From assembly GCA_047495785.1 (NCBI GenBank), contig JBLDXI010000003.1:868001-932000 (forward strand): a DNA stretch of 64,000 nucleotides. The letters run 5' to 3'. The notes under the pieces were generated by a model. The model made no database searches and was not told the DNA's origin. It saw only the letters and a program-made list of their open reading frames with translations. Positions 21,650-63,548 of this stretch are shown here, piece after piece. The translations under genes were made by a program, and so were the position numbers. This DNA is from Lepidodermella squamata. Lineage: Eukaryota > Animalia > Gastrotricha. How positions within the stretch are numbered: the first letter of the stretch is position 1; each line of letters opens with the position of its first letter.

Positions 21650-21651
21650 TA

Positions 21652-39542: not shown

Positions 39543-39901
39543 ATGATTTTAGCAACCTGCTTATTAATTTTTGCGGCAAGTTTGTTAGCTATTAAATCTT
39601 CGCCAGTTCCTGAAGACTCGCTACATGCCGAAGCTATTAGGGCTTTACGTAAGTATTCATACGAAGAAGGAAACTGGGTAATCTGACTTAATTTGTTTTA
39701 GTTCAAAAGGTGAATGCTGTAATTGAAAAGAATGGCGAGAAGTACGCTGAGAAGCTGCTGAATCGCTTACAAGCGCTGCTGAGAAGACGAAAAATGGCGA
39801 AATGTATAGCTACTCTAGGATCGAGGGCCGTCTGCAATAACCAGGCGACTTTCTACCTATGGGCTCAAATGCTTGCCAAGCAGATGATGGATGAAGATTA
39901 G
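39543..39901 (+). CDS. Secreted C-x9-C peptide precursor, copy 1 (101 aa). Exons 39543-39648 and 39702-39901
   Basis: MILATCLLIFAASLLAIKSSP...LLRRRKMAKCIATLGSRAVCNNQATFYLWAQMLAKQMMDED*; 53-nt phase-1 intron; TATAAAA about 50 nt upstream. Confidence 0.9.
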
Positions 39902-41938
39902 CCTTATGACAGAGATAAAGATCATCTCCGTGCGCTTAAGCAAGAATCTATCATTGCCATCCGAACAGCTTGTATTACTATTTCTAATCGCTTCTCTTTC
40001 CCGAAAATTGTATCAAATCCCGTAATTTTGGATGAAACTCTCCCCTTTTAGGATTAAAGATTAACTCTGTTTTGTTTATACCTAAGAATGGTGTGTAAAC
40101 TTTGCATTGTAAACAATTTATGCATAAAGATGAAAATAGCAGGGAGTTCGGACGCATCTGCTTCCGAATGGCTCCATGAGTTTTCAGTCTTACTCGAACC
40201 TTGGGTCTAATGTCGAAAACAATTATGAGCAATTTGTTTAAAACAATACAATTCCGATCTGTCCCATTTTATCATTCATAGACTTAAATCAGTGTCATAC
40301 AAAAACCAGTCATTTTTCCTTCGATAACTCACAGAGCAACGCTATAGGAATGCCCATGAGTAAGTGTTTGCTCTGCTATCCCCGCTTCGGAAAAAGTACA
40401 CTATTATCGAATTACCTTGCCTACCTTAATTTAGTCATGTCTGCTCGATCTGATTTCAAAAGCACAACCGGCAGGGTTCACAGACGCACAATACCAGACG
40501 TCCCCGAATCTTAATTTTTTCCGCCTGAAAACCGGGGTAAACACACCGCCCGCTGTCATGATACACCACTTGTCTGCGTGTCCCTATCCGCTCGCACATA
40601 AATATGATGTGAGCACGTTCGATCGTTAACAATTAGAGAAAAGCTTTTCTGATATTTTAACGCGCACAGTTGTGCATTTGCTCGATCTGGTGTACAAGCG
40701 TGGTCGAAGCTAAACTGCAATCCACGTTAAAGTATGCTTCAAACGAGGCAAATGTAACTTACAGATGGAAGATTCTCAGGCTGCACTGCAGATATGAGTT
40801 CAAACCAGATAATAGAATATATTTATAAGAATATAGAATTATCGCAAGATCCGCCAACTAAACATGTCTTGCGCATCTCAATTTTCAAACGTGCATTATT
40901 CACAATGTGGATGTTAGGGATTCCTGGATGAACGATGCGTCTAAACCTGTCATTCTCGTTTAAATACGAGCTCTATACTCCCGCGCCTTCAAGTTCTAAA
41001 AAATGATGCTGCAAAGTGTTCTTTTGGTGTTCTCAATGATTCCTTTTTCGCTGAAGCCAGGCAGCGACTTGATGGAGGGATTTCACATCCTATAAACATG
41101 ACTGAATCAGGAGTTCTGGCTAAGCATTTATTTCTATGACATAACATCGGAACCGCACCGATCGAGATCGAAGCCGGCGAGTTTTGGCGAGAAGAATTAT
41201 GGCTTTGTTAGATTCTACCCAGAAGAAAAACAAAACCATTTCGCTGGCAAACGATTTTCCAATGTCTAATTTTCTATCAAAAATTGTTTCAAGCCAAGTG
41301 GGTGAAACTCAATAAATATGAACTATTGAGGTAAAGCTGATATCCATAGGGCTTAATGAACGACATCTGAGAAATCAGAAGCAAGCACTAATGACTAATG
41401 CATTGAATATTGGCTGCGAGGGGTCACACGTTTGGGTATCGAAGCAAACATTTCCGCAGGCTTGTAACGTTACATAGATATGAGCCTCTGCGTTTGTTTG
41501 CTCTCGCGAGAAAGCAAATCGTCAATATTCGAGGAAGTAGCTTTTTCGTTACATTATCGTCTCTCTTATTCAGAGGTTTTCAGGCGAAGAGAGCTGACGA
41601 TTTTTTATTCGATTTTGGGTTAGAAAACGGTTCACAAATGCCTTGTTTCTTAGCGTGGATCTATTTTTATCATTTTGTCACTTTGAGGCCTAGTTAGGAC
41701 ACAGTTTGAGAAATGCTGCAGTCCTATAAGACAGCAAGCGTCGATCTGTTCTTAGTTTTTTCTTTTACATCTCCCTTCCTGTGAGCAACACGGACTATCA
41801 GGAAATAGCTCACTGTATATTGCGGGTCGATTTTTGAGTTCAGACATCCTCAAGTCGGAAGCTGAGAAGAATCCATGCCCAGCGAAAGGTTATTAAAGCA
41901 TCAATTAGGCAGCTCTATCAGCCTTTCAACAATTTGAG

Positions 41939-42314
41939 ATGATTGTAGCAGCATGTTTTTCATTTGTTGTTGCGGCAAGTTTGTTAGCAGTTAAATCATC
42001 GCCAATTCCTAAGGACTCGCTAATTCTCAATCCAACAAACCATGCCGAGGCTATTATGGCTTTAAGTAAGTATTGCCAGCCGGAAACCGGGTTACTCGAC
42101 TCATTTTGCTTCAGATCAAAGGGTGAACGCAATAATTGCAAAGAAGGGAAAGAATTACGTTAGGAAGCTGCTGAACCGCTTGCGTGCGTTGCTGAGAGAG
42201 CGGAACATGGCGAAATGTATGGCTGCTATTGGATCGAAGGCTGTTTGCAATAACCAGGCGACTTTCTACCTATGGGCTCAAATGCTTGCCAAGCAGATGG
42301 TGGATAAAAATTAG
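41939..42314 (+). CDS. Secreted C-x9-C peptide precursor, copy 2. Exons 41939-42065 and 42115-42314
   Basis: MIVAACFSFVVAASLLAVKSSP...RERNMAKCMAAIGSKAVCNNQATFYLWAQMLAKQMVDKN*; phase-1 intron; AATAAA downstream. Confidence 0.9.
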
Positions 42315-42499
42315 CATTATTCATGGCTGAAATAAAAATGATTTCTTTGCGTTTGATCAATAATGTATCATTACTAACCGAACTGATTCTTTTACCGATA
42401 ACTATAATAGATTATCTTTCATAAGAAAATCAATAGAATGTAATATAGAAATTGTCCTCGAAAATATAGGTCGAGTAGCTTGGCCAATTCGATATTTTA

Positions 42500-42615
42500 C
42501 GGTATAACATTCGTAAATCGTTTATATCTGAACTCGCCGCGCTCGGTTTACTCATCTCAACTCGCCTCCGGCTCGTTTCGATTCGTAAATCTCGGTCGGC
42601 TCCGTTCAGAAATGA
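42500..42615. repeat. Dispersed ~110-150-bp repeat; further copies at ~43975-44105 (+), ~45385-45485 (-) and ~62850-62960 (-)
   Basis: Shared core ctgaactcgccgtactcg...ttcgtaaatctcggccggctccgttcaga. Confidence 0.75.
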
Positions 42616-44872
42616 ACTCTTTAATCATGTTATACCATACAAATATAAAGGGTTATATTTTGGATGAAACCATGTTCTTTGAGGATTAAATATTAGTCTT
42701 GGTTCAGAAAATTACGTTTCTTATACAACGGTTATTTATACAGCATTAAGGTGATATATAAATCATTTCTGCGTAAGAATATAGTGGGTAACCTCGGAGA
42801 CACATCTGCAAATGAAGAATATAAACAATTCAAGGTTTAATTTTTGGTGAGAAGGTCAAAGGCTGGACACTCCTCGAAGGCTGGAAAATGGAAAACCTGT
42901 TTTGTTCTATTGTGGAATTATCGCCGCTTCGAAGAGCTGCGCTTGAATGAAATTGCTGGGTCACTCTCAATTTAGTCATGTCCAAAATTCTGTGTCTACT
43001 CAATCTTATTTCAAAAGCACAACCGTCAGAGGTCGCAGATGTTATTAAAGGAACAGACCAGACATACGTACATCCCCGAACCCTAATCGTTTCCGCCTGA
43101 TGGCGGAAAACACCCCGTTGTCACGTTACGCCACCTGTCTGTGTGTCCTTAGACGCAGCTCGCACGTACATGAGCCTGTTCGCTCGTCAACAATTAGAGA
43201 AACTTGTGTAGTATTTTTTCGCGCGGAGTTGATATGTGCATTGGCTCGGTCTGCTTTGCGAGCGTGATCGAAGCTTGGACATCTATTAGTAAGCTTCAAA
43301 TAATACATACTGTGGGGTATGCTACTTTTCAAGGGCTATCCAACGGTATAGCGTCCCAGCAGTTCGTAAAAAACATATCGTGAGTCCGTTATGAAGCCAA
43401 TATCTTCGTCATCTATTATGGTTGGCGCAACCAATATCAAATAAAACCGTGCCGATTCTTTTTTGGTGATGGATTGAAGCAAAAAGGGTTCCATCAACTT
43501 GGAGCGGCGTTTATCAAAATTCATCGCACATGCCCTGTTCGGCCCTACTATGGGGGTTGTTACTCCGTATGGAGGATAACCTCTAGTTTACTTTCACCAG
43601 CACGCGGAAGCAAGAAATATATATTTAACTTCCTTTTAAAATCATCGCTCTTTTTACTAACACTTTTTTCACGCCTGTTTGTGCACATCCCTTATCCAAT
43701 TCGTTGAATTCTACTTTGGTCGAAAAACAGTACAGACAGTACAGAAAAACAGTTGGCGTCAGCATTTGTCGACTGTTGCCGGGAAAACAAAACGCAAAAA
43801 ACGCAAAAATGGCTCATCTGAAATTGAGCAGATTGTACACTCGTGAAGACATTAATCAGGTTCGGTTGGAAAAGGGTTCTTGCTGGATTTTACCGGCCGC
43901 AACAAGAGATTCTGCTAGTTTCAAATAGTACAGTATAGAATTGTCCTCAATAATATATTTCGAGCAACTTAGCCAATTCGATATTTTACGGTATAACATT
44001 CGTAAAGCGTTTATATCTGAACTCGCCGTACTCGATTTACTCATCTCAAATCGCCTCCGACTTGTTTCGATTCGTAAATCTCGGCCGGCTCCGTTCAGAT
44101 ATGAACTCTGTACTCATGTTACACCAGATGAATATACCTACCATATTTTTCATAATTTTTCCTAATTGGCAGACCGTCATGTAGCCAATAGCCTAAACAA
44201 CAAATGCGACATAACAGCAAATTTTTCAACTTGCGACATAACAGCAGAAACGCTGTGCATTTTTTTCGTAGTGAGCTTTGCGCTGTTTTGTCGCGAAATA
44301 AAAAATTCTGTTTAGTCGCATTCGCGGTTCAGCGAAATTGCTGTTTTGTCGCCGTGCCTCCAAATTATAACGCATTTTCCGCTGGGAGCTATTTGAGGAA
44401 AGGCCTACTAGGCTGCATTAACAGCTATGTTGTTGCTAGTTGATATTAAGATTCAGGAATTTCACAACATACGTCTCGTCTATGTCCCCAGCATGACGCA
44501 TGGTCTCAAACGTCTGAAAAATCCTCAATTTAGAGTTCACAGTCGATAATGTTTCCTATTTAATAGAATTATCGCAAGATCCGCTTACTGCACACACATT
44601 TCCGCTTATCAATTGGCAGATGTAGGAGGTTAGGAATTTCCAGAACGTTGAGTCTGCAACTGCCATTCTCGTTAGAAAACGAGTACTAATAGCAACGTTT
44701 TAACGTCCTGAAAAATGATGCTGCAAATTTTTCTTTTGATATTCTCGATGGTTCCTTTTTCGATTGAAGCCAAGCGCCGAATTAATGGAGGGATTTTACA
44801 TCCTATAAATATCTTTCAATCAGGGGTACTGGGTAAGTATTTATTAGTATGATAGAACACGGGTTAAAACTA

Positions 44873-45376
44873 CAGTGACAATCAAAAGATCCGCACGGTG
44901 GAATTGAGGCGATGCTAGTTGTAATTTTTCGCACGTGCGAAATGGTGCTCCAGCAAAACGGACCGAAATGAGGCCTTTTTCACGAGCTCCAAAAATAGCT
45001 CCAAGAAAAGGGGGATAGTTTCAATAATAAGGATATATTCATGAGATGTCATGAAACTAGGACATTCTTAGTTAAGAGCCAAAAATTGCGGAAAAATTTG
45101 AGCACTTATAGCACGGTTACAACAAATCAAAAATAATTTTTCCATAATTTTTCTGACAGAATTGTCAACTTTGAGGGCTTCGGAATATTAATTAACGCCT
45201 TATGAATAATCATATTTTTAAAACTATTAAAACTTCTTGGTCTGTCCGAGTTACAATTTTTATTTATAGCTGAGTTCAACCCATGCTTGGAGCTAAAAAT
45301 AGTTCGGGCGCGTGTGAGATAATTTTAGTTTCAACTCAACAAATTCCTGACCGTGCGCAACTTTTGAGTTTCACTG
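44873..45376. mobile_element. Tc1-like MITE (504 bp)
   Basis: TIRs cagtgacaatcaaaagatccgcacggt / accgtgcgcaacttttgagtttcactg, TA on both sides. Confidence 0.8.
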
Positions 45377-45569
45377 TACTTTTCCGAACTGCGCCGACCG
45401 AGATTTACAGAGCAGAACAAGTCGAAGGCGAGTGTAGATGAGTACGGCGAGTTCAGTATAAGCGATTTACGAGCATTGTTTCGTAAAATGCTTCATACTC
45501 GACCTGTACTTACGTGGGAAATTCTTTATTTGAGAAGATAAACTGTTCATTCATGAGGGTATTTTCTAG

Positions 45570-45769
45570 ATCGATATCTGAAAATTGCGGCTTTTAGAGA
45601 TGCCGGGTTGGCAGCTAAGTTGTTCAAGCTTGTCAAGGCAGCGGAGAAACAACGACGCCTAGCAAGATGCGTAGCTTTGCTTGGATCGCCCGCCATCTGC
45701 CGAGACCAAGAAACCTTCTACCTATGGGCTAGAGTTTTGGCGAGAAAAATTATGGCTGATGATACCTAA
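45570..45769 (+). pseudogene. C-x9-C peptide precursor, copy 3: intact exon 2, exon 1 not found
   Basis: ttttctag acceptor, then RYLKIAAFRDAGLAAKLFKLVKAAEKQRRLARCVALLGSPAICRDQETFYLWARVLARKIMADDT*. The upstream region is occupied by repeats and a MITE. Confidence 0.75.
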
Positions 45770-46894
45770 ATTCCATGGACTACATAATCGAGCAGAAGCA
45801 AACCAAAAACGGTTTTGCTGGTCATAATATCAAATTGTAACCTATATCTTATTCTCGGTGAATAATTGTCTCAAAAGACAAACGGATGAAACTCGGCAAT
45901 AAAATTTGAATTAGAGGTACAACATATACCAAGTGCTCAATGAATCACATCTGAGTATGTAATCGGAACTCTGACTACATGAAATCAAAAGAACAAATTG
46001 TTGGGTAACTAAGTTCCGGCAGGCTTGTCAGATGTAACTTCTTCGTTGCTTTTTCATCTACGTAATCTGTCATCACCCATAACGGCATATTCCAACAATT
46101 ATTGGTAAATTTGCAGTCGAAACCCCAGCTTTCTGGGACCGTTGGGACTGAGACTTAGACCATTGGCGAAATAAATTCATCATTTTCTTTTTGCATCTTA
46201 CACGTTTCTTCCGCGTGGGCACAAGCACTTCGACTGGAAACCTATCAGGCCTGTCAAGCGTTCTGAGATGAACGTCGACGATTTAGGAAGTTCCTTTCAT
46301 CTGCCCACTGTTGAAATGACAAGCTACGTCTGAAACATGTCTGCGATCCTAATCGAAAAACAGGTACGCCTTCCCGCGTAACCCGTTCCGCAAGCTGAAA
46401 TATGTTACTGACGGAAGTGTTAGTAAATAGAAAAACTCGTATTTCCCTGCGCTTAGCCACCCACTTCGAATCTGCGAATTTTATTACGTTTAAATGAGCT
46501 CTAGCTGTTGGGCATCTTCGGAGATCTGCCTTCAGAAGTACTGAATTCATTTTCTACTCATAGTTATGCACCTCCTAATGAGCCCATTGATAATTATCAC
46601 TGGTTATTTAATGCTGGTTGAATCTAAGCCAATACAAGGGAAAACCTACCTTACAGACATTTCAAAAAGCCCTAAGGACATTGTCATGTGTAAGTCTCTG
46701 GTTTTTTAATTGTACTAATTCTTTATTGTTTAGTACTTATTTCAGATAGAAAATTGATGTTGATATCTGCAACCAGAGGATTAGATGTAGCAATAAAGTA
46801 CGTGAATCAGCTTGAAATGGAAAGACGGATGGCGAAATGCATGGCTACACTTGGCTCACGATCGGTTTGCAACAATCAATCTACATTTTTTCTA

Positions 46895-49800
46895 CGGAAT
46901 GGCTATTCGTACATAAATATGTATGCGATTTTGGCTATTCGTACATATTTATGTACGCGAATTTGGCTATTCATACATAAATATGTACGCGATTTCGGCT
47001 ATTCGTACATAATATGTACGCGTTTTTGGCTATTCGTACATATGGAGGAAACACACCTAAGACCACGAAAAACGGAATATGGCGTAGTATTGACCCGCAC
47101 ATTTTTATGTGGGAGTGGATATTCGCACACATTCTAGTACAGTTTTACGACTATTCGTAAATATTTTCAGAAAATGAAACTGCATCATTTTTATTCTCAT
47201 TTGCATCATTCAAACCTTTTTCATGATCAATATTCGGTGTTATCATTTAGTATCTTAACGAATACTAGGTTTCAGTTCAACTAAGGATTAGGACTTTAGG
47301 CTCCGGTCTTCGGCCGCGTTTTTTCGATGATGGGAAGACGGTTGCATGCTGACTTTCGAGGCAGCTAATAAGGTGATTTCGCATGTCCGTTGAGGATTTG
47401 AAGCAGGTCACACCAGGATCGCCGCCATCGATGAGAAGAAGTAAGCATGCAGCTGCGAAAACGCCGCAATCGGTACCGTTTGATTGCCTCGGACATGGCT
47501 CAAGGTGAACCTTCAGCCGCCCGTCTTCCATCAGCAACCGGTACCTATCCCTCAGTTGGGCGCGAAGCTCTTCATCCATTGATGTAGCCGGCAAAGAGTC
47601 ATAAACTGCAACCTTGCGGTGGAAAGTAGTCGACAAAACCCAATGGGTGTTTCTGATGTTGTGGAAATAAAATCCTTGTTCGGTTGCCACATCGCCAGCA
47701 AGTGCAACCGTTGTAGCACAAGGGGCCGTTTCTAGCCGAAATGACGATTTAGCGAGCGCAATTGACGTTATAGCATCCATAACTTCGTCTGTGAGCCACC
47801 CTCCTTGCTCAATTATCTCCTTCTCGTCGAGCGACAGGTTCAACTCCGGGACCCAAGCCCTATCGTCGTTCAGTTCCGTTTCTTCGAGTTGAGACCCGCT
47901 GTTGGCGACTGACCCAGACTTGGATGACATCTGCTCTTCATCGCCGCTGTGCTCCAATCCTTCGCTGTTGATGCTGGGATCTTCAAATGGGTTCGATCCA
48001 GTGGACGAAACGCGATCATCTGATATGTACGATTGCGAAGTAGTAGAAATGGAATCATCTGCGGAAGCTGAGGAAGAGTCATCTTTCGATTTCTGCTCGG
48101 AACTAATTTGCGACGGAAATCAGTGATAAAAATATAGACTTCAGCCTTTTCAGACGTTACCTTCTCGATTTGTTGAAGGAGCGCTGCTGTAAGGGCGGTG
48201 GCAATGCCAATGAGCTCGATGCTGATGATGCCGATGGCGACTCCTCCCATTCCTCGTCCTCGACTTCTTCGACCACCTGATTCCTGCGATATTTTACTTT
48301 TAATCATAAATCGATAATACTTCATCGTTTTAACCAACCTTCGTGAATATCCAGTAGAATTGAACTTGGATCGACTTCTTTGGCTTTCTTCGAACGTTGC
48401 ATGAGTTTGAACACAATTGAGTTCGGAACCGGACTCAGAATCGGCAATAGCTTCTTCTCCGCTCGATACGACTTGCGACAATATCTGTTTTCCCTTCCTG
48501 GAAAATAAAAAACGTTAGCACGTTTCAGATATCTAACGCAAAAATCAAACTTGGGTTTAGTCTTGGACTTGGATTTAGAGCCATCTTTCTTGTTGAATCG
48601 GACTTGTTTGGAACTGCTACTAGGCCGGCCTCGACTTTTAACACCATGTCGAAAGTTCAGCTTCCTTGATCGAGCGATTCCTCCAGGTGTCACAAAGTCC
48701 GCTTCCACCGTCGTAGACTGTTGCTGATCAGAGTTCGCTTCTTCGCCTTCTTCACCGCCGTCTTCTTCGATCGCCACCGTTGTTGTCTTCTCGAGGACTG
48801 CAATCGCTTTTCCCTGTCTCGCGAGTGCTCGAAAATCCTTGAGACTGGAAAGGTAACGTTGGAATTGCACTGAGCCATGCTGAGCTAATATATCCGCGAC
48901 GTCTGTCAAGACATGCACTGCTTCTTTATACTTCCTTTGCGCCTTGGGCACTTTCGGCTTAACAGCAGGCGGAGAATGGAAGTTGGCTGATTCAAAGTCG
49001 AACGGTTCCTCCACAGCTACGTCATCCTGAATCAAAGTTGGGGGGTGATTTTGACGAGATAACCGGTGGTACTGCGCCCCGAAATTTGAAATGTCAAATA
49101 GCGGCTCGTTCAACTTCTTGCGGATGATTAGGATGTGGTGGCACGGCAATTTGTGGCTGTTGTAGTAGCTACTATCACACTTGTCCAAAAAGCTTGCGTA
49201 CTTGCGATCACCTGTATCACAAATAACCACAACACAGCCAGTCTGCACCTTACGATATTGGACCGAATTAAGCAGTTTTAGCTGCAGGAAGAACAGTTTC
49301 ACGGCGTGATTGGTGACTGCGAACGAAGCTTTGTACAAGTCCTTCTCGAAGTCCTTGCTGACCGGTTGAACACGCTTTGAGGTTGCGGCTATCGCTTGAT
49401 CGTCAGCCAGTTCAGCGACTGTGCAGCTTCACCCACATTTCCACTGAGGATAGCCAATTTCTGTCAAAATAGTCGAGAAGACTGACATACTTCTTGTCGA
49501 TGCGAACATCAATGCCAGTTGCAGCTTCAATGAACATTCGGTGAGCATCATCGAATTTGGATATTTCATGCGAATTTGACATGGCGAGGACGCAAGCATA
49601 CAGCCTCTCTTTCACCTCAACTTCAGTTAGCGCAGTTGCTATAAGATTTTTGAAAAACTTGCTGACGTGCCACAAGCACAACAAAACCAGGCATCCAAAG
49701 ATTTCTTCGAGAAGGCTTATTTGCTTGAGGTCTTTGTCGACCAAGCAGTTTCATCCAACAGCATTGCTATTGCGCCAACTGCAGTCTTGCCATTGTCGGC

Positions 49801-51671
49801 GTTGGTGAAACAGAAGAGGATCAATTTGTACCCAGCTTTGTTCGTCCCGAATGTAGTATCGATCACCATTGTCTTCGGCTTTTGCAGTTTCAGACGGGTC
49901 AGCATTGCAGGGGTGGAGAAAAACAAGACTTGAGAGAAGCCGTCTTGAGTTAGCTTTTCAGCAACGAAGCCACCTTTTTGCTCGATAGTTTCGAGGAAGT
50001 CGTGCAACCGCTCCATTTTAACCTCGTCGCTGACGTCCAGCAGCTTCAAATTCGCAACATGCTTCGAAGTAACAGGTTTTCCAATCATTGACTTGATGTG
50101 TTTTGCTGCAGTTCGGCGTTTGATGCACATGTTGAGCGACGTAAACTCCTTTCGAAACTGGTCCTTCTCTTCTTCTGTCAGCCTGCAATTCGCTGGATAA
50201 GTTGCGAAGTCATCGGCGTTCACCGTGTGGCCCGTGTGCCTAAAAACGGCAGCAGCTACATGCCAGAGTCCATCTTTCCTTAATGTAAGCGACAAACGCG
50301 CCTTGCACTCAGAATACAGATAACCTAAAGTTGTACTTGGGTTTCAATGCTCTAAGAATCATCATTTTATTACCTTGGGTTTCTCGGACACCATTGCTCT
50401 TTGTCGCACGCTCAGTACTGTGGCAACATTCGACAATCAGTTGCTTGGGCATCGTTGAACGCTTTATGAAAGGCTGATGAGTTTGATCGCAATGCTTCTT
50501 CACCTTGCCGAACAGTACGCTCTTCGTCATGTTAAAAGAAGCGCCATGAGTGAAAGAGCCTGGGTCGCAGTCGATAACAAGACCTGGAATCAAAGTCGGA
50601 CCGGGATTCATCTCAACATTGCCCGACTGAAGCAGTACATAAAATATTATCAGTCTCCCTCGCTTGCCCGAACCGTTGTTGACGTCAATTTTGAACTTGA
50701 CGTGGCACGTCACGGTTAGCCACGCTGGCGTTAGCCTGGGCGAGGAGGATGGCGATACAGAATTGAAACCAGGGTGGCAGCCATTGCCAATTAGGACAAG
50801 AAAAAGTAAAGTAGATATCATTCTACCTATAGGTGAACTCTGAATATTAGATTGAACACAATTTCACAATGAACCCGTTTGAACCGAATTATAAGCTGAA
50901 TTGTGGTTGTATAAAACAAGAGCTTCCAGCCTAATCTAACTTATGTCTGGGATTCCAGTATAATCTGACCAATGTTCAAAATATAATCGAGAAGCAAAGC
51001 AAAGCAAATGTGGGTTGTATTCGGGACTAGACCTCATAAAAAAGATCCGATGTCCATATTATTTCAAACGACATCTTCAAAATTAAGGCCATTATTGAGA
51101 AATATAGAATGAAAGATATCAAAATTTTGATCGAAATCCAAGAAAACTTTAGGTTAGCTGTTGTTTAAAGACTGGCTTAATGAAAGTAGATAGTGGTTTG
51201 AGAAGCTAATATTTCCCCAAGACAGCGCGCTTCCTCCGGTAACAAGGGCATCAGCGTTTTCGCAAGGAATTTCATTAATGTGATGGGACGGTGACGAGCC
51301 GTATAAACTGGTTCAATGCTAAAATATTTCATTTAACAACCTGAACAAATTTTTTATTTTTTTTTTATTTTTATTTTCTCGCTCAGTAGTAGACACGTTT
51401 GTATCTCCATTCATATATTGCTTTTCAAAAATTACACTCATTTTTTATGGACATTTATTTATTTCATCTCACTTATCTGGCTGATTTATGTTTATTAAGC
51501 CTATTTAACCACATTTTTTACCATATGTACGAATAGCCAAAATCGCGTACATATTATGTACGAATAGCCGAAATCGCGTACATATTTATGTATGAATAGC
51601 CAAAATCGCGTACATAAATATGTACGAATAGCCAAAATCGCGTACATATTTATGTATGAATAGCCTCACTC
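46895..51671 (-). mobile_element. Mutator-like element (MULE), 4.8 kb, internally deleted
   Basis: 9-bp TSD TTTTTTCTA (46886-46894 and 51672-51680); ~150-bp TIRs built of ~33-bp tandem units; transposase, SWIM and Ulp1 coding segments inside. Confidence 0.95.
47277..50821 (-). pseudogene. Spliced MULE transposase gene: 2A-like motif, FAR1-like Zn finger, MULE DDE core, SWIM, AT-hook-like motif, Ulp1 (C48) protease
   Basis: Intron 50325-50373 joins ETQG to YLYSECKARL..HTGH. Motifs IDTTFGTN, VDKD, LCLWHV, KLPCHH, SRGRP; Ulp1 WLTDEVM, THW, YDSL, QSNGTDCGVF. Frame breaks near 49740 and 49415; the catalytic E segment is absent. Confidence 0.85.
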
Positions 51672-52905
51672 TTTTTTCTATGGGCACAAATTGTCGCTCG
51701 AAGAATTATGGATGGCTATTGATAAACTAAAATACAACATTATACCACATATTGCCAAGATAGGCCTGAAAATAACAGAATATTATAAGATTTAATAAAA
51801 ATTCGAAAACGTTATTTCGAGGTTGTCCCCATCAGGCTCGTGTCTCGTGTTACCAGTTTCCTTAGTCAACAGGGGGTGTTCTACATCATCTATAGCAGCG
51901 ACCTGTTCCGATCACCGGACCAGAGAACTGAAAAATGAACGTCTATGCCAGCGACCTCACCCTCGCCGCCTGGGCCTGTCATTGGTGGCGACAATTCAAT
52001 GCTTCGACGCGCGAAAAAATACTAGACAATTTTATCTATTATTGCTGACGAGCGAACGGGATCCTAAGGGCGAGTTCAGGAACATACAGACAGACGGTGT
52101 CTCATGACAACGGGGTGTGTTCAATCGTCGGCGGAAATTATTAGGATTCAGGGACGTTCGTCTATGTCCGATGTACATGACTAAATCGCAAATCGAGCAG
52201 AAGGCGAGTTAATATCATTCTATTATATTGTACCAGCAATTTATTCTCAGCGCAGACATTTTTCGAAGCGGAGAAAATCCCAAAATAGATCATAAAATGT
52301 ACCCGCAAAGCAGGACAAAATTGAACAATGAAAATGAACTTTTAGTTATGGGATCTGATTTCTTGGGCTCGGTAAAGAAAAGATCTCCAGCGTCATCTCT
52401 AACGTAATTCAACTTGAATGAATGAAATAAGGTCGACAATCGCAAAGATGAAACATCAATTATATCGTTTCAAATTTCTGCGAACCAGCCACTTGGAATT
52501 ACAAATATCTGAGGTACCAGCTCGTTTAACAGTTAGTTAACAGTTGCTCCATTTTCCATGTAACAGTGAAGCTGGAAATGAAATACCGTAAAAACCGAAG
52601 GCACTGTCCGCTATTTCTTTCGAAGGGTATTTCCAGAAAATTAAATTGCTCGCCTGCACAAATCAAAGCAAAACAGGCCTTAAATTCTTAGGATAGGTCT
52701 GCCCCTGCCCTTATTTCGGTCCTGCCTTGTAATTCAGTATTTACGGTAATCAGATACCCATCTTCCACTCCACCGCTTGGAGCAACGTCCTATTTCTTAT
52801 GATTTTTGGGAGAAAGTGTTGAAAAGAGCTGTTGAGTGGCAATAATACATCCTTTCTTAAGCGCATCATAATAATCTTTATTTCAGCCATAAATGCATAT
52901 GAAGG

Positions 52906-53279
52906 CTAATCTTCTTCCATCATCTTCCTAGCAAGCATTTGAGCCCAAAGGTAGAAGGTAGCCTGGTTATTGCAGACAGCTCTCGATCCAAGAATCGCCA
53001 CACATTTCGCCATTTTCTGCTCTCTAAGCAAGGCCCGCAAGCGGCTCAGCAGCTTCTCACCGTAATCCTTACCATTCTTTGCAATCATAGCATTCACTTT
53101 ATGATCTGACAAAATGAAGTCAGGTTAGTGTGGTTTCATGCTGTTTCTCAGTACTTACATAAGGCTCTAGCATGGGCATAGTTTTTTGGATTGAAAAGTT
53201 GTGAGTCCTCAGGAATCGGCGAAGATTCGATAGCTAAGAAACTTGTCGCAAGTAGTAATAAGTAGGTTGCAACGATCAT
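52906..53279 (-). CDS. Secreted C-x9-C peptide precursor, copy 5. Exons 53279-53159 and 53105-52906
   Basis: MIVATYLLLLATSFLAIESSPIPED...REQKMAKCVAILGSRAVCNNQATFYLWAQMLARKMMEED*; 53-nt phase-1 intron. Confidence 0.9.
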
Positions 53280-54373: not shown

Positions 54374-54581
54374 TGTGCAACCCCCACTTGAGCAACGGCC
54401 ACTTGCGCAACGATTTTTAGCATTATTATAGGCGAGCGCACAAGTCATTGTTTATTAACCAATAAGAAGCTACAAAAGCATTTATACAGTTTTGAAAGCG
54501 ACAACATATTTGTCAGATAATTTGTCGAGTGTCGAATAGACAACAAGTTGTTTGTCCTTATTAGGATTAACAACAAAAACC

Positions 54582-55394
54582 TCAACCATTGATTGGATTT
54601 TTGTTCATTTTTACGTATTTCTTGGAACGCTTCGCCATTAAACCCGGCTCGGCGGCCACAGTGACCTTGGCAGCCGCCTCTGACTCATCCTTGCGCAACA
54701 ATTCAATCAGCCGCCACACATTGATGTGGTAGGACTTAGCGCCCCAGTTGACTTTCGCGTTCCAGCCATCTGCCGCGTTATTCGTGCCAGTGTTCAGGCC
54801 GTGTACACATTCCACTCGGACAATTTGACGATCACGGTCCACAGCTTCTGCAAATACTTCTTGAACCGGGCCAGCGAAGGTGGGCAACCGGCAAGAAGCA
54901 TCGGCTAGTAATGCTCGGGTAAGGAGAGCGAGAGCCACGAAGCGGCGAATGAAGCGCCGAACGTTGGGCAGCTTGATGTAGTGACCCCACAAACCATTTT
55001 CGCGAACCCAGGATCGCCTTGCAGTAATGGAAGAAGCCTAGAGCGAAAATTTGCTAAAGTCAATTCGTTAAGATCAAATCAACTTACATACTAACATTTC
55101 CCTGAAAAATTTGCGAATAACCGGTGTGAACCCTGTTTCAAATTCGACTGTTGCGCTTTTCTGGCTCAAATCTACCCGGCTTTGAATGATCTCGAAAAAC
55201 CTTCGTAGGTTTTTTCTGACTTTAAAGTCAGCAGAGCAAAGATAGTTGGCAACAACAGCTGCTCGCTGCTCAAACTCCTCGCTGTAGGCGCGCTCCATAC
55301 TAGACATGAAGTCGCCAACTTCTGCACTCGGGTTCTTCGGCACTTTTCGTTTGCCTCGGATGAACATTTCTCTCTCATCCATCTCTATTTTCAC
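54582..55394 (-). mobile_element. Degenerate second MULE transposase relic
   Basis: TVEFETG (tDFE-like), CFFHYCKAI, RRFVALALL, TNNAADGWN, HINVWRLIELLRKDE. Confidence 0.7.
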
Positions 55395-55999
55395 GTTTAG
55401 GTTGTTCAGTTTTTAAGGGATTATGACAGAGGTCACATTACCTACTTACATATCCTTAGAGAATAGAGTTACCTGTTTATTATTATATGTACAATATAAA
55501 CTGTAATATATAATGTGCACACATCTGTGGAGCTCTATGGATGTGCGTTGTATAAAACGACCAAAAAAGTCAAATTACTTTCAGAGCTGAAAACTTCATG
55601 TATCATTTTACTTCCGTCTTTAAAGTTAACAAAACCTGGAAAGCACGTGGGGTACTTTTAACTCATGGCAAGTGTTATAATATTTGGCGACGCGTTACAC
55701 ATGCCGCGTGGCTAGGTTTCTCATTCATGATAAGATGTCGACAAAGTCGAATGTCGCCTCTAAATGCGTGGTGCAAGATGACTATCACGACCTTCTCTTC
55801 CGTCTGGTGTGACTTGTCCCCCAGCTTATACTAAGGTTATAGTTTCCGTTTCCGGCCTAGGTATTCGTATATCGAATGACATGCGTTACGGAACTTAACA
55901 GGCAACATGATGAAGGTATCTTTCGTGTTGCGTGGTGTTCTCTAATTGATCATTTGCCTCAAAGCATTGATCAAGTTCAAAAACTTCAAAAGGCCGACA

Positions 56000-56373
56000 A
56001 TGCTTGTATTATTAGGCCTCTGCATGCTAATTACAATTGGTTCCGCAGCTAGCAAGGATTCACAAGATACCACGGAGGCTCACAATTCAAAAGAACGCAA
56101 CGGGTTACATCCGAAAACCATACGTAAGTCATTGTAAGCTTCCGATCAACGTTTTCCTAATGATTGTTTTCCCCAGCTACGAATTATCGGGCGATGCTGT
56201 TGGCCAACATAAGGTCAGCCATTGATCTAATCAATCAACTGAAAGAGAGAGGAAAGAAAAGCAGAATCGCCAAATGCATTGCCACTCTACGGTCGGTGGA
56301 AATCTGTACGAACAAAGGAGCTTTCTACATTTGGGCTAAAACACTTGCCAACAAAATTGTGGATGGGAATTAA
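56000..56373 (+). CDS. Secreted C-x9-C peptide precursor, copy 6 (divergent). Exons 56000-56123 and 56177-56373
   Basis: MLVLLGLCMLITIGSAAS...KKSRIAKCIATLRSVEICTNKGAFYIWAKTLANKIVDGN*; phase-1 intron; AATAAA downstream. Confidence 0.9.
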
Positions 56374-57485
56374 AATTATATTAGGTTTGCCAACCTTCAA
56401 TCTCATTTGCAGATGATTTCGAAACTTCGCGCAATAAAATCTATTTTAGTCTGTTCTAATTGTAAATCAGCGAGGCGTTCAAATAAAATATGTTTAGTTT
56501 GAAAAAAGTCTCATTTTCCTTTTATCATTTTATCCGACACTGCTGAAAGGAGTATGGTAATCAAAATGGTTTCTTAGCTTTTTAACCTTAATTATTCGGC
56601 CTTCATCTGTCATCGCGGTAATCTCAATCGACAGAAAAGTTAGCGCAGCTGAGCTATATTCGACTTTATCTTCTCATTTTGCAATAGTATCATATTGGCA
56701 ATCAGACCGCAATGTCGACTCACTAATTAAGTGCAGGAAAAAGATGAATCATTTCCGTGGCAATGTCTGCTTCAACAATTCCCTTACCGGATAAGTTTGG
56801 CTGAACGCATTATACAGTGTGCGAAGTACCCACCTCGAGAGGTCCAGGCAATAAACCCCCTAAAAAACCCTAATAAACCCTGAAAAACCAAAGCGAGGAA
56901 GGACTGATGCGTAAATATGCGTAAAATGATGACGGATTATCCTTTCAAAAATGACTGCGCTCTCGATGAGAGAACTGAAAAACTCAAAGAGTGAATCAAT
57001 CAAGTAATCGGCAATAAATGAGTACATTCAATTCATCAAAAGCCTATTTCCATAGCTTTCCGGAATATGGCATGTCAAGAGGGGAAAGGAGACATGTTAC
57101 TCTGATGCGTGTAATTCGCACGCCTCATAGATATCTGAGAAGGACAATTAGAAGAGTGAGTCAATATCAATTATTAAGACAGAATCCAGTTCGTAGCAAA
57201 TGTCTCAGACTAGTTGGAAATATGTTGAACACCTTGTTGGGTTAACGCGAACTTGTTCTCCGAGACTAACCTGTCTATTTTCTGAACTAACAAATTGGAA
57301 ATTATGGCCTAAATGCTCACAGGGCCATCCATCACTACTGGTCCTTGTTATAGTCGGAAGTCCGATCTGCTGCGACCGACCACGCACAAAATTTGAGCTG
57401 TGAATTAGATAGGCTAATTAATTGTCAATCGTATTCTTTAACCTACGCGAAGCGCTCCCTTAACTTCATTCTACTAAAACTAAAG

Positions 57486-57797
57486 ATGCTAAGTACTTCC
57501 TATTTTCTCAAGTTATTATCCTTCACATGTGCGCTGCTCGGAACATTGGCAATTGCCAGTGAGGAGTCTAGAAAGCTGAAGTGGAAGCTATTGGGCTATA
57601 AGCTAAACGAGGTGTTAAAGCAAGACAACAAGCGTTTAACTGCTCTTGTTCAGCTTATTGCTGGCAAAGAACGAGCGCGCCGACTGGCGAAGTGCATGGC
57701 TGTTTTCAACTCGAAAGCCATCTGCAGCTACCAGTCTAGCTTCTACATTTGGGCAAAGATCATGGCGCGGAAAATTATGGAAGGCAGTGAAAAATAG
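57486..57797 (+). CDS. Secreted C-x9-C peptide precursor, copy 7 (intronless, 103 aa)
   Basis: MLSTSYFLKLLSFTCALLGTLAIAS...RARRLAKCMAVFNSKAICSYQSSFYIWAKIMARKIMEGSEK*. Confidence 0.9.
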   Translation: MLSTSYFLKLLSFTCALLGTLAIASEESRKLKWKLLGYKLNEVLKQDNKRLTALVQLIAGKERARRLAKCMAVFNSKAICSYQSSFYIWAKIMARKIMEGSEK

Positions 57798-58619
57798 CTA
57801 TATCAACTATTAGCATTAAACTTCACAAATTGACATGCTATATTGTAAATAAATTACATTCAGAATGCATATTCTAAAGCTTTGAAGAGTTTATGTTCCT
57901 CTGGAATTCCCGAAGAAGTTCCGAAGAGTGGGCTCACAGGCCTATCAACTCGGTTTGTCCGGCATGTCGCTGAGTTCAGCGGACCAGTGTTTCGAACTAG
58001 ATTGAAGGTGTGCCATGTGATGACTATATTCCTACTGAAAAGGGCCATCTAATGACCTACAATAAACACCTGAGCGCTTCAGGACATTCAAGTACTACAT
58101 CTTGAGTTGTCCGCTAAATTGGGCCCGCCGAGTTCAATAAAGCCAGGGATTTTGGAACTCAGAGCGGATCCTGATTTATAGCGGACCGCTCTATGTAAAT
58201 CAGCCCCCTATTATGATGGATGAATGCAAATTTCAGTAATAATTAGTCTCATTAGACATGCGCCACATCTTGCTACACCTGGCACTCAAGTGGCAGAATT
58301 CGATGGTATCCGTGGTTAGGATATAAGGGGTGATTAGCGTTGTCCGCCAAGAAACAGTCCGTCGTGCTAGTTTTTGGGATTTGCTTATCCTCGAGTGAGA
58401 TGGTAACGAGTTACTCACTTTCTCTGTACCAATTGTCGCTTTCAAGTTGATAGAACGGAGAGTTTTCGTAGACCTATGAAATATTTGGAACCATAATAGG
58501 TTGGAACGGATCAATCGTGGTATGCGCGCGGTATCTGCAATTGAATATTACATTTTCTGAGGATGTGTTATGAATCTATATTTTGTTGTCGGTGATCGCC
58601 TGTTGTTCGCAGCGACACC

Positions 58620-59200
58620 TTATTTATTGGCTGACTCCGGATCTGCGTTACGAAGAAAAAGCATAATCCTGCACCCCGACTTCAAAGAGGCTGCCGAAGA
58701 AGCTAAATTTGAACGGCCTTTCAGCAGACGCACTCGCCGAAGTGCAGGCGCTGATCTCGTAGCACTGCAGCACGGACGCATCGCCCTCGTCCTCCCTCCA
58801 CGGCGGTCTTCTCGGCGTCGTCCACCGCTCCGCCGGCTCCTGCACCGTTGTTACCCGCTTCCCAGCCCGCTCCGGCTTTTGCACACCCGCTGCCCGCCCC
58901 GCACCCGGCCTTGGCCACGGCTAACCCCGTCAGTAAGCGTGTCGTTATTATCGATAACATCATCAACATGCGCCGATGTGAGATTGAGCCCGAGCTTGTG
59001 CTAGCGGCGCCCTGGCTCGACTATCACCCTGCCGTTGGCCTCCGGATAATTTGCTCTACGCCAGCTGGCGCGGATCGCTTGCTGAAGAAGGAACTCCCCC
59101 CTCGCTGGTTCACCGTCCCAGGGAACCGGATTCTAGTCGCCCGAGTTGCTTTCTGCTTTTCCACCTGTTCTAGCTCTCGGGTTTCTCTTCTCAATCACCC
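58620..59200 (+). mobile_element. GC-rich degenerate coding relic, possibly a retroelement ORF1/gag fragment
   Basis: Pro/Ala-rich linker followed by KRVVIIDNI...LRIICSTPAGADRLL; frameshifted and compositionally distinct from its flanks. The identity is a guess. Confidence 0.3.
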
Positions 59201-60589
59201 GCAACCGTTTCTTATGATTCATGTCGGATTTATATGGCCTATCGACTGACTATGACTGGAACTATGATTTAGTAATCATCAAAACACCAACGTTATGGGC
59301 GAAACGGATGGCGAGATAAGTTACCAAACGACATTGACGTCACCTGCCGGATTGCCAATGGGCCTTTAATTTCGGACCCGATTGGTTGGTGAATGGCGAA
59401 ATCCCTTTGGACACCTGAAATAGGTCATTGTTTGGAATAAGACGACACAACACGAAAATCATTGTATTTTCACCGAAGAAAAAAAATATAACCGCTAACA
59501 ATTGAGCATCAATTAGCTGTGATTAATCTTTCGAGAAATGTCTAGTCCATTTCCTGAAGCAGCGCGGTTGGAAAAGGCATTTAGATGGCGTGCGGTCGCG
59601 CAATATTATGACTATTAGTGTCCAGGGCTAAGGAGAAAAATGCCACAGCGTTCATTTCGTACCATTTTATAAGCCTGAAAAATGAAACCAGAGGGATCTG
59701 TCAAGATGAATCAGCAGAAAGCTCATAAAGGTCATTCCTTCCTTCTTTCTCTATTCTCTATGGAAAGTACTGTGAACACTGTTTGTCACAAACGTCCACT
59801 TTCTCACAGTACTTATGAACTGTACTTTCCTCCTTGGACTGAAAGAGATCTTTTTTCCAAGCACAAAGAAATGCGTCCCTGGGCGTTTTAAGCCATTTAA
59901 GCTACTCCTAATTATAGCTTAATAAATGACACTTTGCCCAGGCGAGCAAAACAAGCCACGTGGACTGTCGAAGTTGCTGGTTATTTAAAATAATCTGAAT
60001 GAATCATGGGCAAGATTGTGACGAAAGCGCAGCAGAAAATAGACCAAGTCGAAATAGAACTCGAAAAGTCGAAAAATTCCGTGTTGTTCAAAATGAGGCC
60101 CATTGAAGTTTGTTTATTCAGCATAAGGCAATGATACTGGTGTCACGGAGTTGGTATCCCCTTTCTGTTATAATTCATTATAATACAACTCTGCTGATAA
60201 TTAAAATGTTAGTAAAAAATAAGTCGTCATCGCACTGCATTCGAGAATTCATTAGCGCAAACCGTGAACTGGGTTGCGGATCAAGTTATAGCTGAATGGT
60301 TCTGTCAGGGCTAAATTGAAATCCCAAAGAGATGAAGCTGTGAGCTATGGAATTAATGAATAATTATTAAAATCAACGTATTATGAAAGCGCTGGCAGCT
60401 TCTGTGTCAAACTTCGAGGCTCTATAGTTTCCGATTTCAGCAGAAAAATGATAAACTTTTTCAAATTTTATTTGAATGAGAATGAATAAAGTACGAGGCG
60501 ATTTTAGAATCTGCTCACATGCATTATTTCCGGTTAACAAGAAAGGATGTTCAACATCACATTTTTCAATAGAGATACATCCAGTAGAT

Positions 60590-60904
60590 CTATTGCTGAC
60601 CGCCTTCCATGATATGCCGTGCTACAATCTTGGCCCAAATGTAGAAGCTCGACTGGTAGCTGCAGATGGCTTTCGAACGGAACACCTCTAGGCATTTATT
60701 CAGCCGCCGTTTCTTCTCCTTGTCGACTACAAGTTGAACAATAACAAATAGGCGTTTGTTGCTCTTTTGATTTGCCAACTCGCTTAGCTTTGCACCCATC
60801 AGTATCCTCGTTATATTCTTCGCCTCTGCACTGGCGGCTGCCGAGATGCCAATCAGGGCAAACGTGAAAGACAAAAGCTTGAGAAAATAGGAAGTTTTCG
60901 GCAT
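60590..60904 (-). CDS. Secreted C-x9-C peptide precursor, copy 8 (intronless, 104 aa)
   Basis: MPKTSYFLKLLSFTFALIGISAAAS...KKRRLNKCLEVFRSKAICSYQSSFYIWAKIVARHIMEGGQQ*. Confidence 0.9.
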   Translation of the reverse strand: MPKTSYFLKLLSFTFALIGISAAASAEAKNITRILMGAKLSELANQKSNKRLFVIVQLVVDKEKKRRLNKCLEVFRSKAICSYQSSFYIWAKIVARHIMEGGQQ

Positions 60905-61644
60905 GATAACGGCTGTGATGTTGTGGAGTATGGAACACGTGCGGATATCATGAAATCACTCACTAACGCGCTGAGGTCCGGAGTTTTAAATGTGCTACTT
61001 AGATACAGGATACTTTCACGCACATCCAGGTACCTTAACCTAGAGAGTAAAAGGTTGCTGCCTGTTATCCGGATTATGTACACTGCGGATACTCATCGTC
61101 TGTGGTTCGTGAAACAGTACACGGGAGTATGTGATATGCACTAGCTTGTGTACGTTACAAATCGATTGTTGTTTTTTTTGGAAGAAACAGGTGGCGGGGG
61201 CTCGGATGAGTCATTTCCGCATTGTTGAAATGCGAAACCGTGGCGAATCAGCCTATTTCCTGACAGCCCAGCTCCTTAGCTACAAATATATAAGGTCATG
61301 CCTGGACAGAGTTCAGAAAGCATCTGCGCATCAAAAGCATGACGGCATTCGTTTCTATTCTCGGCGAGTTGCTTCATGGCCCACTCCGCTATCCTTCGAG
61401 CTAAATATTAGGCTGTGGTTTTGCTGAGGAGGTTAATAAGAACGGGTTTATCAAGCCACGCCCAAGCCACCCCCCCAAAATTTCGAGTTTTTCGGCTATT
61501 TTTGAACGTCTGAGGTCCATTTTTTCCCCATATTTCTCGGCTACCCACCCCCGATTTCAAAAGGCTAGATAAACCCTTGCTATGAATTCTTAGAAACGAG
61601 GGCTTCCTCAACTTCATTCTACTCGAGGAAACAAGTCTAGGTAA

Positions 61645-62025
61645 GTTAAATGCTTTCTATTTCCTCAAGCTGCTATTATCCTTTGCATTTGCGATCATCA
61701 GAACCTTTTGAATCGCCAGTGACGAGTCAAGAAAATTGACATGAAAGCTGTTGGGCGATGGAATAATTCAGTTGGTTAAGCAAGACGGCAGACTCACAAC
61801 CACGTTGGTTCAACAGCTCGTTAGCGTCATTATGAAAGTGAAATTGAAAATTCACCTTTTTGCCTCTGCATTCACGTAATAAACGCCGCATTTTCTCGCC
61901 ACCTTTCACCTTCAAACTTCCGTAAACAAGCCTAAATCCGAGTTATTCAACGACGCTGAAGATATAGTGGCGGCTGGCGGAATACATGGCAGCTTTCAGT
62001 TCGAATGAAATCTGCAGGCCATAAG
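61645..62025 (+). pseudogene. C-x9-C peptide precursor, copy 9 (intronless type, decayed)
   Basis: Recognisable YFLKLL, IASDESRKLT*KLLGD, KQD and RLAEYMAAFSSNEICRP*, with stops, an insertion, and the first Cys lost. Confidence 0.75.
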
Positions 62026-63236
62026 GGGATCAAAAAGTCCTTTTCAGTTGAATTCGCGACGGAATGAGTTTAAGTCACAGTCTTCTTAAATCTCAACCCC
62101 TATTTCCCCCGTTTGATGACTTGGAAACCGAGAAAAGCTTCTTTCATGGTATTCGCATTTATAAAGAATGGAATAGGAATTGGATCCCAAATGGTAAAAA
62201 ATTGGGTTCCCATGTGGAGAGCGAAACTTCCGTTAATTCCTGCTACTTGGTGTATTATGTTGTATTCCATAAGTACTCCCTACTCCCCATACAGGAATTT
62301 TGGCTTACGAACTGAGTATCAGGGAAGTTGAGCGACGTTTAAGACGACGAATCAATAACTAAATAACAAATATTTCATAAAATGGGCGTCTGGCCGGTGG
62401 CGGGAGGTTGAGTGTCAACAAAGGTTGATCACGTCGAGCGATATAATGAAAATTACAAAAAGGATGCATCGTGATGACATGTTGAGGAAATTGCATTCGC
62501 AAGGCTTGAAAATTCATTTTATCGAGCTGACAAACCAGAAACACTAGACCAGCAGAATGGCTTGTCTGACTTTCCTTTCGTTTCATTTCTTTTCGTTCAC
62601 TTGCTTCAAAATACCTTGGCTGTCCCAGCTGGCAATGACAGTATCTGGACATTCAACCCAACTTCAACGATTATGAGCAATTGTAGAATGGGGCCTCCGG
62701 TCAATTCGCCAACTGAACTGGCAGAAGAGGCAACTCTGATTGAGTACAACCAAAGCTTTTGGTCGATATCGACGACGTTTCTGAAACATTCACCATTTAT
62801 ATAGACATTGGAATTTCCTATATTTGTATGGCATGACACGAGTAAAACGTTTGTATCTGAACGGAGCCGGCCGAGATTTACGAATCTGAACGAGTCGAAG
62901 AAGAGTGGGGATGAGTAAATCGAGTACGGCGAGTTCAGAAATAAACGATTTACGAGGGCTGTATCAAAAAATATTAACTTCAAACTAGAAGTTTCTCAGT
63001 AGATCCGGAAATGAGCACCGGCTAAAACACAGAGGCGAACAGTGAAACAGGGGGATATAACCATCAAGAGATCATCACAGCTCGATTAATGCGACCTATC
63101 GTCCTTCGGAAATACTATGTACAGAGTTTTAAGAATGTTTCGCCTATGCCATCAGCCCCAGCGATTACTTCCAGGCTTGATGACGGATTGCGAAATGCAA
63201 TGAGGAGGATTGCAAAACTCAGAACTATTATTTTTA

Positions 63237-63548
63237 TTATTTTTCACTGCCTTCCATAATTTGCCTCGCGATGATCTTTGCCCAAATGTAGAAGCTAGAC
63301 TGGTTGTTGCAGATGGTTTTCGAGCTGAAAACAGCCAAGCATTTCGCCAGTCGCCGCTCGCGCTCTCTGTCGACCATAAGCTGTACTAGAGCAGTTAGGC
63401 GCTTGCTGTCTTGCTTCGCCAACTCATTGAGCTTGTCGCCAATCAGTTGCCTCAACGTCATTCTCGATTCTTCACTGGCCACGGTTAAGATTCCAATCAG
63501 GGCAAAAGTGATAGAAAATAGCTTGAAAAAATAGAAAGTGTTCAGCAT
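63237..63548 (-). CDS. Secreted C-x9-C peptide precursor, copy 10 (intronless, 103 aa)
   Basis: MLNTFYFFKLFSITFALIGILTVAS...RERERRLAKCLAVFSSKTICNNQSSFYIWAKIIARQIMEGSEK*. Confidence 0.9.
   Translation of the reverse strand: MLNTFYFFKLFSITFALIGILTVASEESRMTLRQLIGDKLNELAKQDSKRLTALVQLMVDRERERRLAKCLAVFSSKTICNNQSSFYIWAKIIARQIMEGSEK

Follow-up and report, generated by a model that had tools for sequence, protein, structure and literature searches.

Of all parts of animal genomes, small secreted proteins have the poorest annotation, and orphan secreted families are common in the genomes of invertebrates. Among described systems, several resemble the one considered here. Calcitonin/CGRP/amylin-type precursors (Pfam Calc_CGRP_IAPP) are small and combine a signal, a pro-region, one or more basic residues, a disulfide ring, and an amphipathic helix near the C-terminal end. 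Pro-MCH holds a cyclic peptide at the extreme C-terminus of a precursor of ~100–160 residues, behind basic residues. Invertebrate insulin-like genes, e.g., the nematode ins genes, encode old and diverged secreted helical disulfide ligands of ~100 residues, found both in tandem clusters and as singletons, and evolving under purifying selection. Twin Cx9C (CHCH) proteins are small helix–loop–helix proteins with Cys residues nine apart in a helical context, while helical antimicrobial-peptide precursors have three parts and are encoded in tandem arrays with dead copies. Here, we analyze a gene array at positions 39543–63548 of a stretch of 64,000 nucleotides (nt) from contig JBLDXI010000003.1 (Lepidodermella squamata, Gastrotricha), referred to below, at its full length, as the window. 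The proteins encoded in the array share features with each of these systems, and they appear to constitute a previously unnamed animal protein family with no match to a known one; the family is new, whereas its kind, that of small secreted disulfide proteins encoded in tandem arrays, is a known one.

In calcitonin-type peptides, the ring has four or five residues between the Cys residues, whereas in the 73 aligned members of the array family, on which all conservation figures given below are based, it has nine (60/73) or eight (13/73); a conserved amidation signal is missing, and in the predicted structure the helix preceding the ring continues far upstream. Calcitonin-type membership was rejected on the ring size, the amidation signal, and the lack of a Pfam match, which bears out a misfit already proposed in the original prediction, made for this locus from the sequence alone. 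The ring of Pro-MCH is of similar size; however, MCH ends just after the ring, while the array family has a conserved helix of about 14 residues past it, and MCH is, to our knowledge, known from vertebrates only, while the array genome has invertebrate-like introns of 50 nt. The helix after the ring and the absence of a Pfam match were the grounds for rejecting Pro-MCH membership. Insulin-like proteins have six or more Cys residues and the A/B-chain pattern, compared to two invariant Cys in the array family, and insulin/relaxin membership was rejected on this difference and on the absence of both a Pfam Insulin match and a fold match. Twin Cx9C membership was rejected as well: the array proteins have a single unit, no Pfam match, and, in eight of eight copies, a signal-like N-terminus, which points to the secretory pathway rather than to the mitochondrial intermembrane space. 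Finally, the array family differs from precursors of helical antimicrobial peptides in its modest charge and amphipathicity, a conserved small-residue face, purifying selection, and a "pro-piece" that resembles a part of the fold; membership in the cationic helical antimicrobial class was rejected because the net charge has a median of only +3 and the hydrophobic moment averages 0.38.

Protein layout, database searches, and predicted fold

The genes of the array encode precursors of ~100 residues, and their shared layout is as originally described: a signal-like N-terminus leads into a helical middle region that varies between copies, a basic residue stands four positions ahead of the first Cys, and the last ~37 residues are conserved. 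The two Cys and a Trp are invariant, and 36 of the 73 members have two Cys in total. The position four residues before the first Cys is occupied by Arg in 81% of members and is basic in 88% (64/73). Ser (77%) and Ile (82%) are conserved in the loop; it is followed by Phe (89%), Tyr (74%), the Trp, and Ala (84%), and, four residues on, by Ala (93%) and then Ile (68%). The information per column is 0.4–1.6 bits upstream of the conserved Arg and 2–4.3 bits from the Arg onward. From this Arg to the C-terminus, the median length is 37 residues, and the quartiles of the net charge of this part are 1–4, the charge being at least +4 in 32% and at most +1 in 27% of the family; the C-terminal residues of several window copies are acidic. 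Despite low identity upstream of the Arg, large hydrophobic residues are kept at positions 30, 35, 42, 50, 53, and 57 in 71–96% of members, and residues 47–64 show alpha-helical periodicity (permutation p = 0.003).

At the N-terminus, a heuristic finds an uncharged hydrophobic run of 11–18 residues, followed by small residues, in 8/8 window copies with exon 1, and a signal-like run of 9–19 residues in 41/52 outside members with an N-terminus. The remaining 11 outside members look like proteins with mis-called starts or like open reading frames (ORFs) consisting of exon 2 only. These runs appear too short for a typical membrane anchor, and secretion of the family proteins, as assumed in the original prediction, is plausible.

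The AlphaFold2 model of copy c9, built with the 73-sequence alignment, has a mean predicted local distance difference test (pLDDT) score of 88.9, and of 93–97 over residues 51–100. In the model, a helix (residues 47–73) runs through the basic residues and Cys69, and is followed by a short turn (76–79) carrying Cys79, a loop, and a helix (87–98). In this last helix, the conserved residues share one face, which includes two small Ala at a spacing like that of tightly packed helices. Foldseek searches with this confident model retrieve no neighbor, the best E values being 1.7 for PDB and 0.77 for BFVD, and a profile search of PDB yields designed helical bundles only, at E > 0.01.

Database searches were run exon by exon, the full-length window queries being the three intronless genes only. 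A word-indexed protein search with c9 gave no match, and a similar search with a 27-member alignment retrieved six environmental proteins only, none of them named. No Pfam match was obtained for seven window copies at E up to 10 or for the 27 members at E up to 0.1, the noise differing from member to member. An exhaustive profile search of 1.84 billion representatives identified 65 relatives at E ≤ 1e-3, 11 of them at E ≤ 1e-10; nearly all have 70–200 residues and the domain at the C-terminus, in a layout like that of the window copies. One match, P0044, a repeat protein of 1528 residues with six weak repeat matches, was discounted as due to chance. The matches all derive from metagenome assemblies in ENA or from assemblies of Logan runs, and none has a name or a Pfam domain. 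Two patterns applied to JGI metagenome contigs matched 83 stretches and no relatives, and a literature search by motif returned nothing relevant. The family may hence still be called unrecognized, with no Pfam, PDB-sequence, or fold match and no named relative among the 65 profile matches.

Intact protein or processed precursor

Our first-ranked reading, held tentatively and given somewhat less than an even chance, is that of an intact, disulfide-stapled, secreted helical protein of ~75–80 residues with an extracellular role as a ligand or a recognition molecule. Each gene would yield the ~100-residue precursor, which would enter the secretory pathway and lose its signal peptide. The mature product would be all-helical, with variable N-terminal helices carrying a conserved hydrophobic stripe; its last ~37 residues would comprise the terminal part of a long helix, a loop closed by a single disulfide staple between Cys nine or eight residues apart, and another, short helix that is conserved on one face (an aromatic residue, Trp, two small Ala, and Ile). 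The protein would stay in one piece and act outside the cell, binding its partner through the conserved C-terminal module, and the four old lineages present in the array would give different specificities. Secretion, the disulfide bond, the absence of internal cleavage, and the ligand role are all features that we infer.

Several points weigh against an intact protein. The conservation jumps exactly at the position that is basic in most members, as expected of a processing site before a bioactive peptide, and true prohormones also have amphipathic pro-regions. The single-sequence AlphaFold model of c9 is poor (pLDDT 50.7), so that the fold depends on the alignment of the family; signal peptides were called with the heuristic rather than with a trained predictor; the disulfide bond and the helix contacts in the model are putative; and the ligand role is suggested by general features of the family. 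The conservation pattern is what a prohormone would show, and such a precursor, ranked second, is possible though on the whole unlikely: a convertase would cut after the conserved Arg, or after a basic residue beside the first Cys, and free a ring-plus-helix hormone, neuropeptide, or pheromone of ~37 residues. The conserved part is situated at the very C-terminus, in most window copies a second basic residue adjoins the Arg or precedes it by 2–3 residues, and the ring-plus-helix is an established hormone design (calcitonin-type). However, a dibasic pair is found at the cleavage position in 24/73 members, no more than the local background, as neighboring positions are basic in 24–40%, and a strict furin-type site is found in 6/73. 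In 94% of the family, the Arg is followed by Leu, Met, Tyr, or Phe, and a large hydrophobic residue here is, by the published rules of thumb for precursor processing, unfavorable for cleavage. Further, the confident model puts the site in the middle of a helix, the upstream part keeps its hydrophobic stripe, as a folded protein would, and Gly-Lys/Arg, the amidation signal, is found in 13/73 tails only, and at the end of no window copy. We rank the intact protein above the prohormone because dibasic and furin sites are few, the P1' residue is hydrophobic, the site is mid-helix, and the "pro-region" is fold-like; the release of a peptide at the basic cluster, suggested originally, is thus unproven and somewhat disfavored.

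An antimicrobial or toxin-like family, with the amphipathic C-terminal helix acting on membranes or on a target in another organism, would account for the layout (signal, variable middle, cationic amphipathic end), for the tandem array with dead copies, and for the highly charged third of the members; still, we consider such a defense or offense effector improbable. The median charge is only +3, more than a quarter of the members have a charge of at most +1, acidic ends occur among the window copies, and the last helix has a modest hydrophobic moment. The paralogues, old and constrained by purifying selection, are not diversifying rapidly, the conserved small-residue face of the helix points to packing or to a specific partner, not to lipid, and searches of Pfam, PDB, and the fold libraries retrieve no toxin or antimicrobial family; the toxin and antimicrobial options of the original prediction are thereby weakened. 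Least probable of all, and very much so, is that the proteins are not secreted but small and anchored in a membrane or located in an organelle, or else that the ORFs are not expressed. The spacing of nine between the Cys residues would then be an echo of the mitochondrial twin Cx9C motif, and none of the array genes is present in the protein collections searched; against this stand one Cx9C unit instead of two, the lack of a CHCH-type Pfam match, and the conserved, hydrophobic, signal-like N-terminus, while purifying selection, conserved splice sites and promoters, and the maintenance of the family in a second animal argue against dead ORFs. As for a bolder version of the ligand role, namely, a new ring-plus-helix peptide or cytokine-like signaling ligand family shared by poorly sampled compact-genome invertebrates, with receptors possibly among the orphan receptor-like genes 17–34 kb upstream of the array, we regard it as a long shot.

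Copies, gene structure, and evolution of the array

A six-frame regular-expression scan of the window for the Cys-x9-Cys/aromatic-Trp motif finds nine copies at 39.8–63.3 kb and none in 30 shuffles of the window, so that both the copies and the motif are far above chance, and the array sits where it was originally placed. A tblastn search with the copies' own exons adds the downstream piece of c4 at ~51.67–51.72 kb, the decayed copy c10, and the signal-peptide exons of the two-exon copies. No family copy was found upstream of 39.5 kb by tblastn and profile search of the window, and a profile of nine C-terminal domains has no match elsewhere in the window. The original tally of ten copies, seven of them intact, needs correction: the split copy and the decayed copy are there, but the supposed orphan exon (c3) belongs to a complete gene, which makes eight intact copies, and a relic (c11) had not been listed. 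The array hence contains 11 copies, i.e., eight intact, one split by a transposon (c4), and two decayed (c10 and c11). The birth and death of genes, part of the same prediction, is visible as the two relics and the split copy.

Copies c1, c2, c4, c5, and c6 are of one design, in which exon 1 encodes the signal-like segment and 15–20 further residues and ends in a phase-1 GTAAGT donor, followed by an intron of 49–56 nt with a pyrimidine-rich acceptor; splice models were checked by coordinates and phase arithmetic only. Copy c1 (39543–39901, plus strand; lineage A) is intact, with exon 1 at 39543–39648, an intron of 53 nt, and exon 2 at 39702–39901 including the stop codon; it is supported by ORFs, the motif, the phase-1 splice model, and a TATA-like element at –48. 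Two further intact genes of lineage A are c2 (41939–42314, plus strand; exon 1 41939–42065, intron 49 nt, exon 2 42115–42314) and c5 (52906–53279, minus strand; exon 1 53279–53159, intron 53 nt, exon 2 53105–52906). Copy c6 (56000–56373, plus strand; exon 1 56000–56123, intron 53 nt, exon 2 56177–56373) is intact and represents a lineage of its own. Copies c7 (57486–57797, plus strand), c8 (60590–60904, minus strand), and c9 (63237–63548, minus strand; the reference sequence for the structure model) are intact intronless genes of lineage B, each a single ORF from ATG to stop.

Copy c3 (44715–45769, plus strand) has a long intron of 737 nt between exon 1 (44715–44832) and exon 2 (45570–45769). 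Its exon 1 has a signal-peptide-like start and a phase-1 GTAAGT donor, and the acceptor at 45569 is phase-matched; the matching phases and the signal-like exon 1 make c3 a complete gene. The long intron contains a fragment (45376–45451) of a dispersed repeat of ~160–200 nt, which is also found between array members at 42450–42647, 43939–44136, and 62819–62974, with 81–89% identity and one copy inverted, and may be a small non-autonomous element.

The relic c11 (approximately 40905–41204, plus strand), identified by repeat family D6, blastn, and tblastn, is c3-like. It consists of 244 nt with 76% identity to the promoter and exon 1 of c3, almost adjoined by 26 nt with 96% identity to the end of c3 exon 2, and has no continuous frame; it is an internally deleted relic. 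The second decayed copy, c10 (61646–62015, plus strand; tblastn), belongs to lineage B; its N-terminal half and a short remnant of the C-terminal module are readable in different frames, and the family profile fails to detect this copy.

Copy c4 (46566–51722, plus strand; ORFs, motif, tblastn, and splice model), the two pieces of which were compared separately, is split inside the conserved C-terminal module by a MULE-type DNA transposon (46900–51665, minus strand; inverted repeat I1, direct repeat families D1 and D2). The element is 4.8 kb long, with terminal inverted repeats of 145 nt that are 97% complementary and built of ~32-nt sub-repeats. On the minus strand, it has six consecutive ORF pieces, i.e., five reading-frame interruptions (short introns or disabling changes), with weak Pfam matches to the MULE/ZSWIM RNaseH-like transposase fold and to Ulp1-type C48 peptidase. 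As the terminal repeats are near-identical, a young insertion is suggested; no perfect direct duplication flanks the element in the range tried.

The 150 nt upstream of the ATG are conserved among c1, c2, and c5, with a mean column identity of 74%, including the TATA-like element near –48; the same element is seen at –49 in c9. AATAAA or ATTAAA occurs 17–152 nt past the stop codon in seven of the eight intact copies, c3 being outside the scan. Over the conserved domain, the copies form four lineages, c4 being outside the comparison: c7/c8/c9 together with c10 (70–75% identity), c1/c2/c5 (72–77%), c6, and c3. The identity between lineages is 25–45%, and they are no closer to each other than to outside members (42–48%).

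In nearly all pairs of copies, the ratio of nonsynonymous to synonymous substitution rates (dN/dS; Nei–Gojobori) is 0.1–0.5 over each of the three regions (signal, middle, and C-terminus), with dS among paralogues ranging from 0.3 to saturation, all these values being rough due to small codon counts. Because of the low dN/dS combined with large dS, the paralogues are considered to be old and under purifying selection, unlike the usual fast-evolving toxin or pheromone arrays to which the original prediction pointed. A recent lineage-specific burst was rejected, dS being too large, and so was strong diversifying selection, with dN/dS below 1 throughout. In one case, c7 and c9, dS is 0.10 over the last 37 codons (57687–57797 and 63237–63347) versus ~1.15 in the remainder of the genes, and this patch is likely due to gene conversion between the inverted paralogues 5.4 kb apart.

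Relatives in another animal and the surroundings of the array

Contigs of the relatives were fetched from four assemblies, two of them of biosample SAMN13674978, and from two Logan runs, one of which (SRR10912804) carries the same protein as the SAMN13674978 assemblies. These contigs are compact metazoan DNA, encoding Integrator subunit 1, G6PD, V-ATPase A, an M13 peptidase, Fringe, and an Egalitarian-type domain. Their ribosomal protein uS5 resembles that of vertebrates most closely, and neither uS5 nor G6PD has a named relative at 90% identity. Exact look-ups of housekeeping proteins encoded on these contigs led only to environmental clusters without a name, four ORFs of the window are absent from the collection used, and no paper mentions the run and sample accessions. 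This other compact-genome animal has at least 15 paralogues at no fewer than eight loci, forming same-strand arrays of two to three at four loci and singletons at four others. The sequences thus indicate that the family is present in at least one other compact-genome animal, and extends beyond the genome analyzed here. The original reading, that of a released peptide and a lineage-specific secreted effector system, is only partly supported: secretion is plausible, the family extends beyond one genome, the release of a peptide is somewhat disfavored, and a toxin-like or antimicrobial effector role is improbable.

The long housekeeping genes of the metagenomic animal are almost intron-free (L002, 151–7278; L012, 4581–8131 and 15859–20233), and same-strand neighbors are ~70–660 nt apart, down to 70–110 nt in places, an operon-like packing that, together with introns of ~50 nt, could help to place this animal. 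Seven family matches (P0002, P0003, P0017, P0026, P0028, P0031, and P0047) are short, 44–80 residues, and the two of these sequences that were inspected lack an N-terminal signal segment; they may be exon-2-only ORFs, in which case the phase-1 intron of the window copies may also exist in the other animal.

The window has the look of invertebrate animal DNA, with no sign of a human origin. Its introns are generally ~50 nt long, with GTAAGT donors and pyrimidine-AG acceptors, and Pfam identifies LRR, ankyrin, reverse-transcriptase, and MULE-type domains. Rfam has no match in the window or in four related loci, the window contains no tRNA genes, and PDB and Pfam searches with neighboring ORFs gave no indication of the source.

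Inside the array, ORFs of 106–144 residues without a Pfam match are found at 54582–55394 and 58570–59249, the latter G+C-rich, Pro/Arg-rich, and in overlapping frames; both groups may be what is left of other mobile elements. A low-complexity stretch (38521–39091) immediately precedes the array and gives long ORFs that overlap on the two strands, with a high content of Val/Ile/Thr or of His/Arg. Further upstream, a segmental triplication (5566–22678) includes an ORF of 739 residues that is receptor-like, with a weak ANF_receptor match and a hydrophobic C-terminal half; no relative of it was found at E up to 1e-5. Partial C-terminal copies of this ORF at 12220–12645 and 22053–22678 belong to the receptor-like units, which alternate with three minus-strand genes for signal-peptide-bearing beta-propeller-like proteins (9780–11312, 15757–17504, and 18868–20371). 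Minus-strand ORF fragments with an RVT_1 match at 13845–15724 are probably a decayed LINE-type retroelement between the duplicated units.

Against the background of orphan secreted families, the array family stands out as being well delimited and structurally confident, with no neighbor, and shared by at least two animals. Its relatives are known only because prokaryote-style gene callers caught intronless copies in metagenomes. The family can now be defined in usable terms, by two Cys and a Trp that never vary among the aligned members, one conserved face of a helix, a fold predicted with confidence, and, in part of the family, a shared phase-1 intron. The array family is also a reminder that an organization of the type "propeptide, basic cluster, peptide" cannot be read from sequence alone. 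The four old lineages, side by side in one array, provide a test bed. If these proteins are a true ligand family, they would constitute a new signaling module for a neglected animal group; if not, they would form a well-delimited orphan family.

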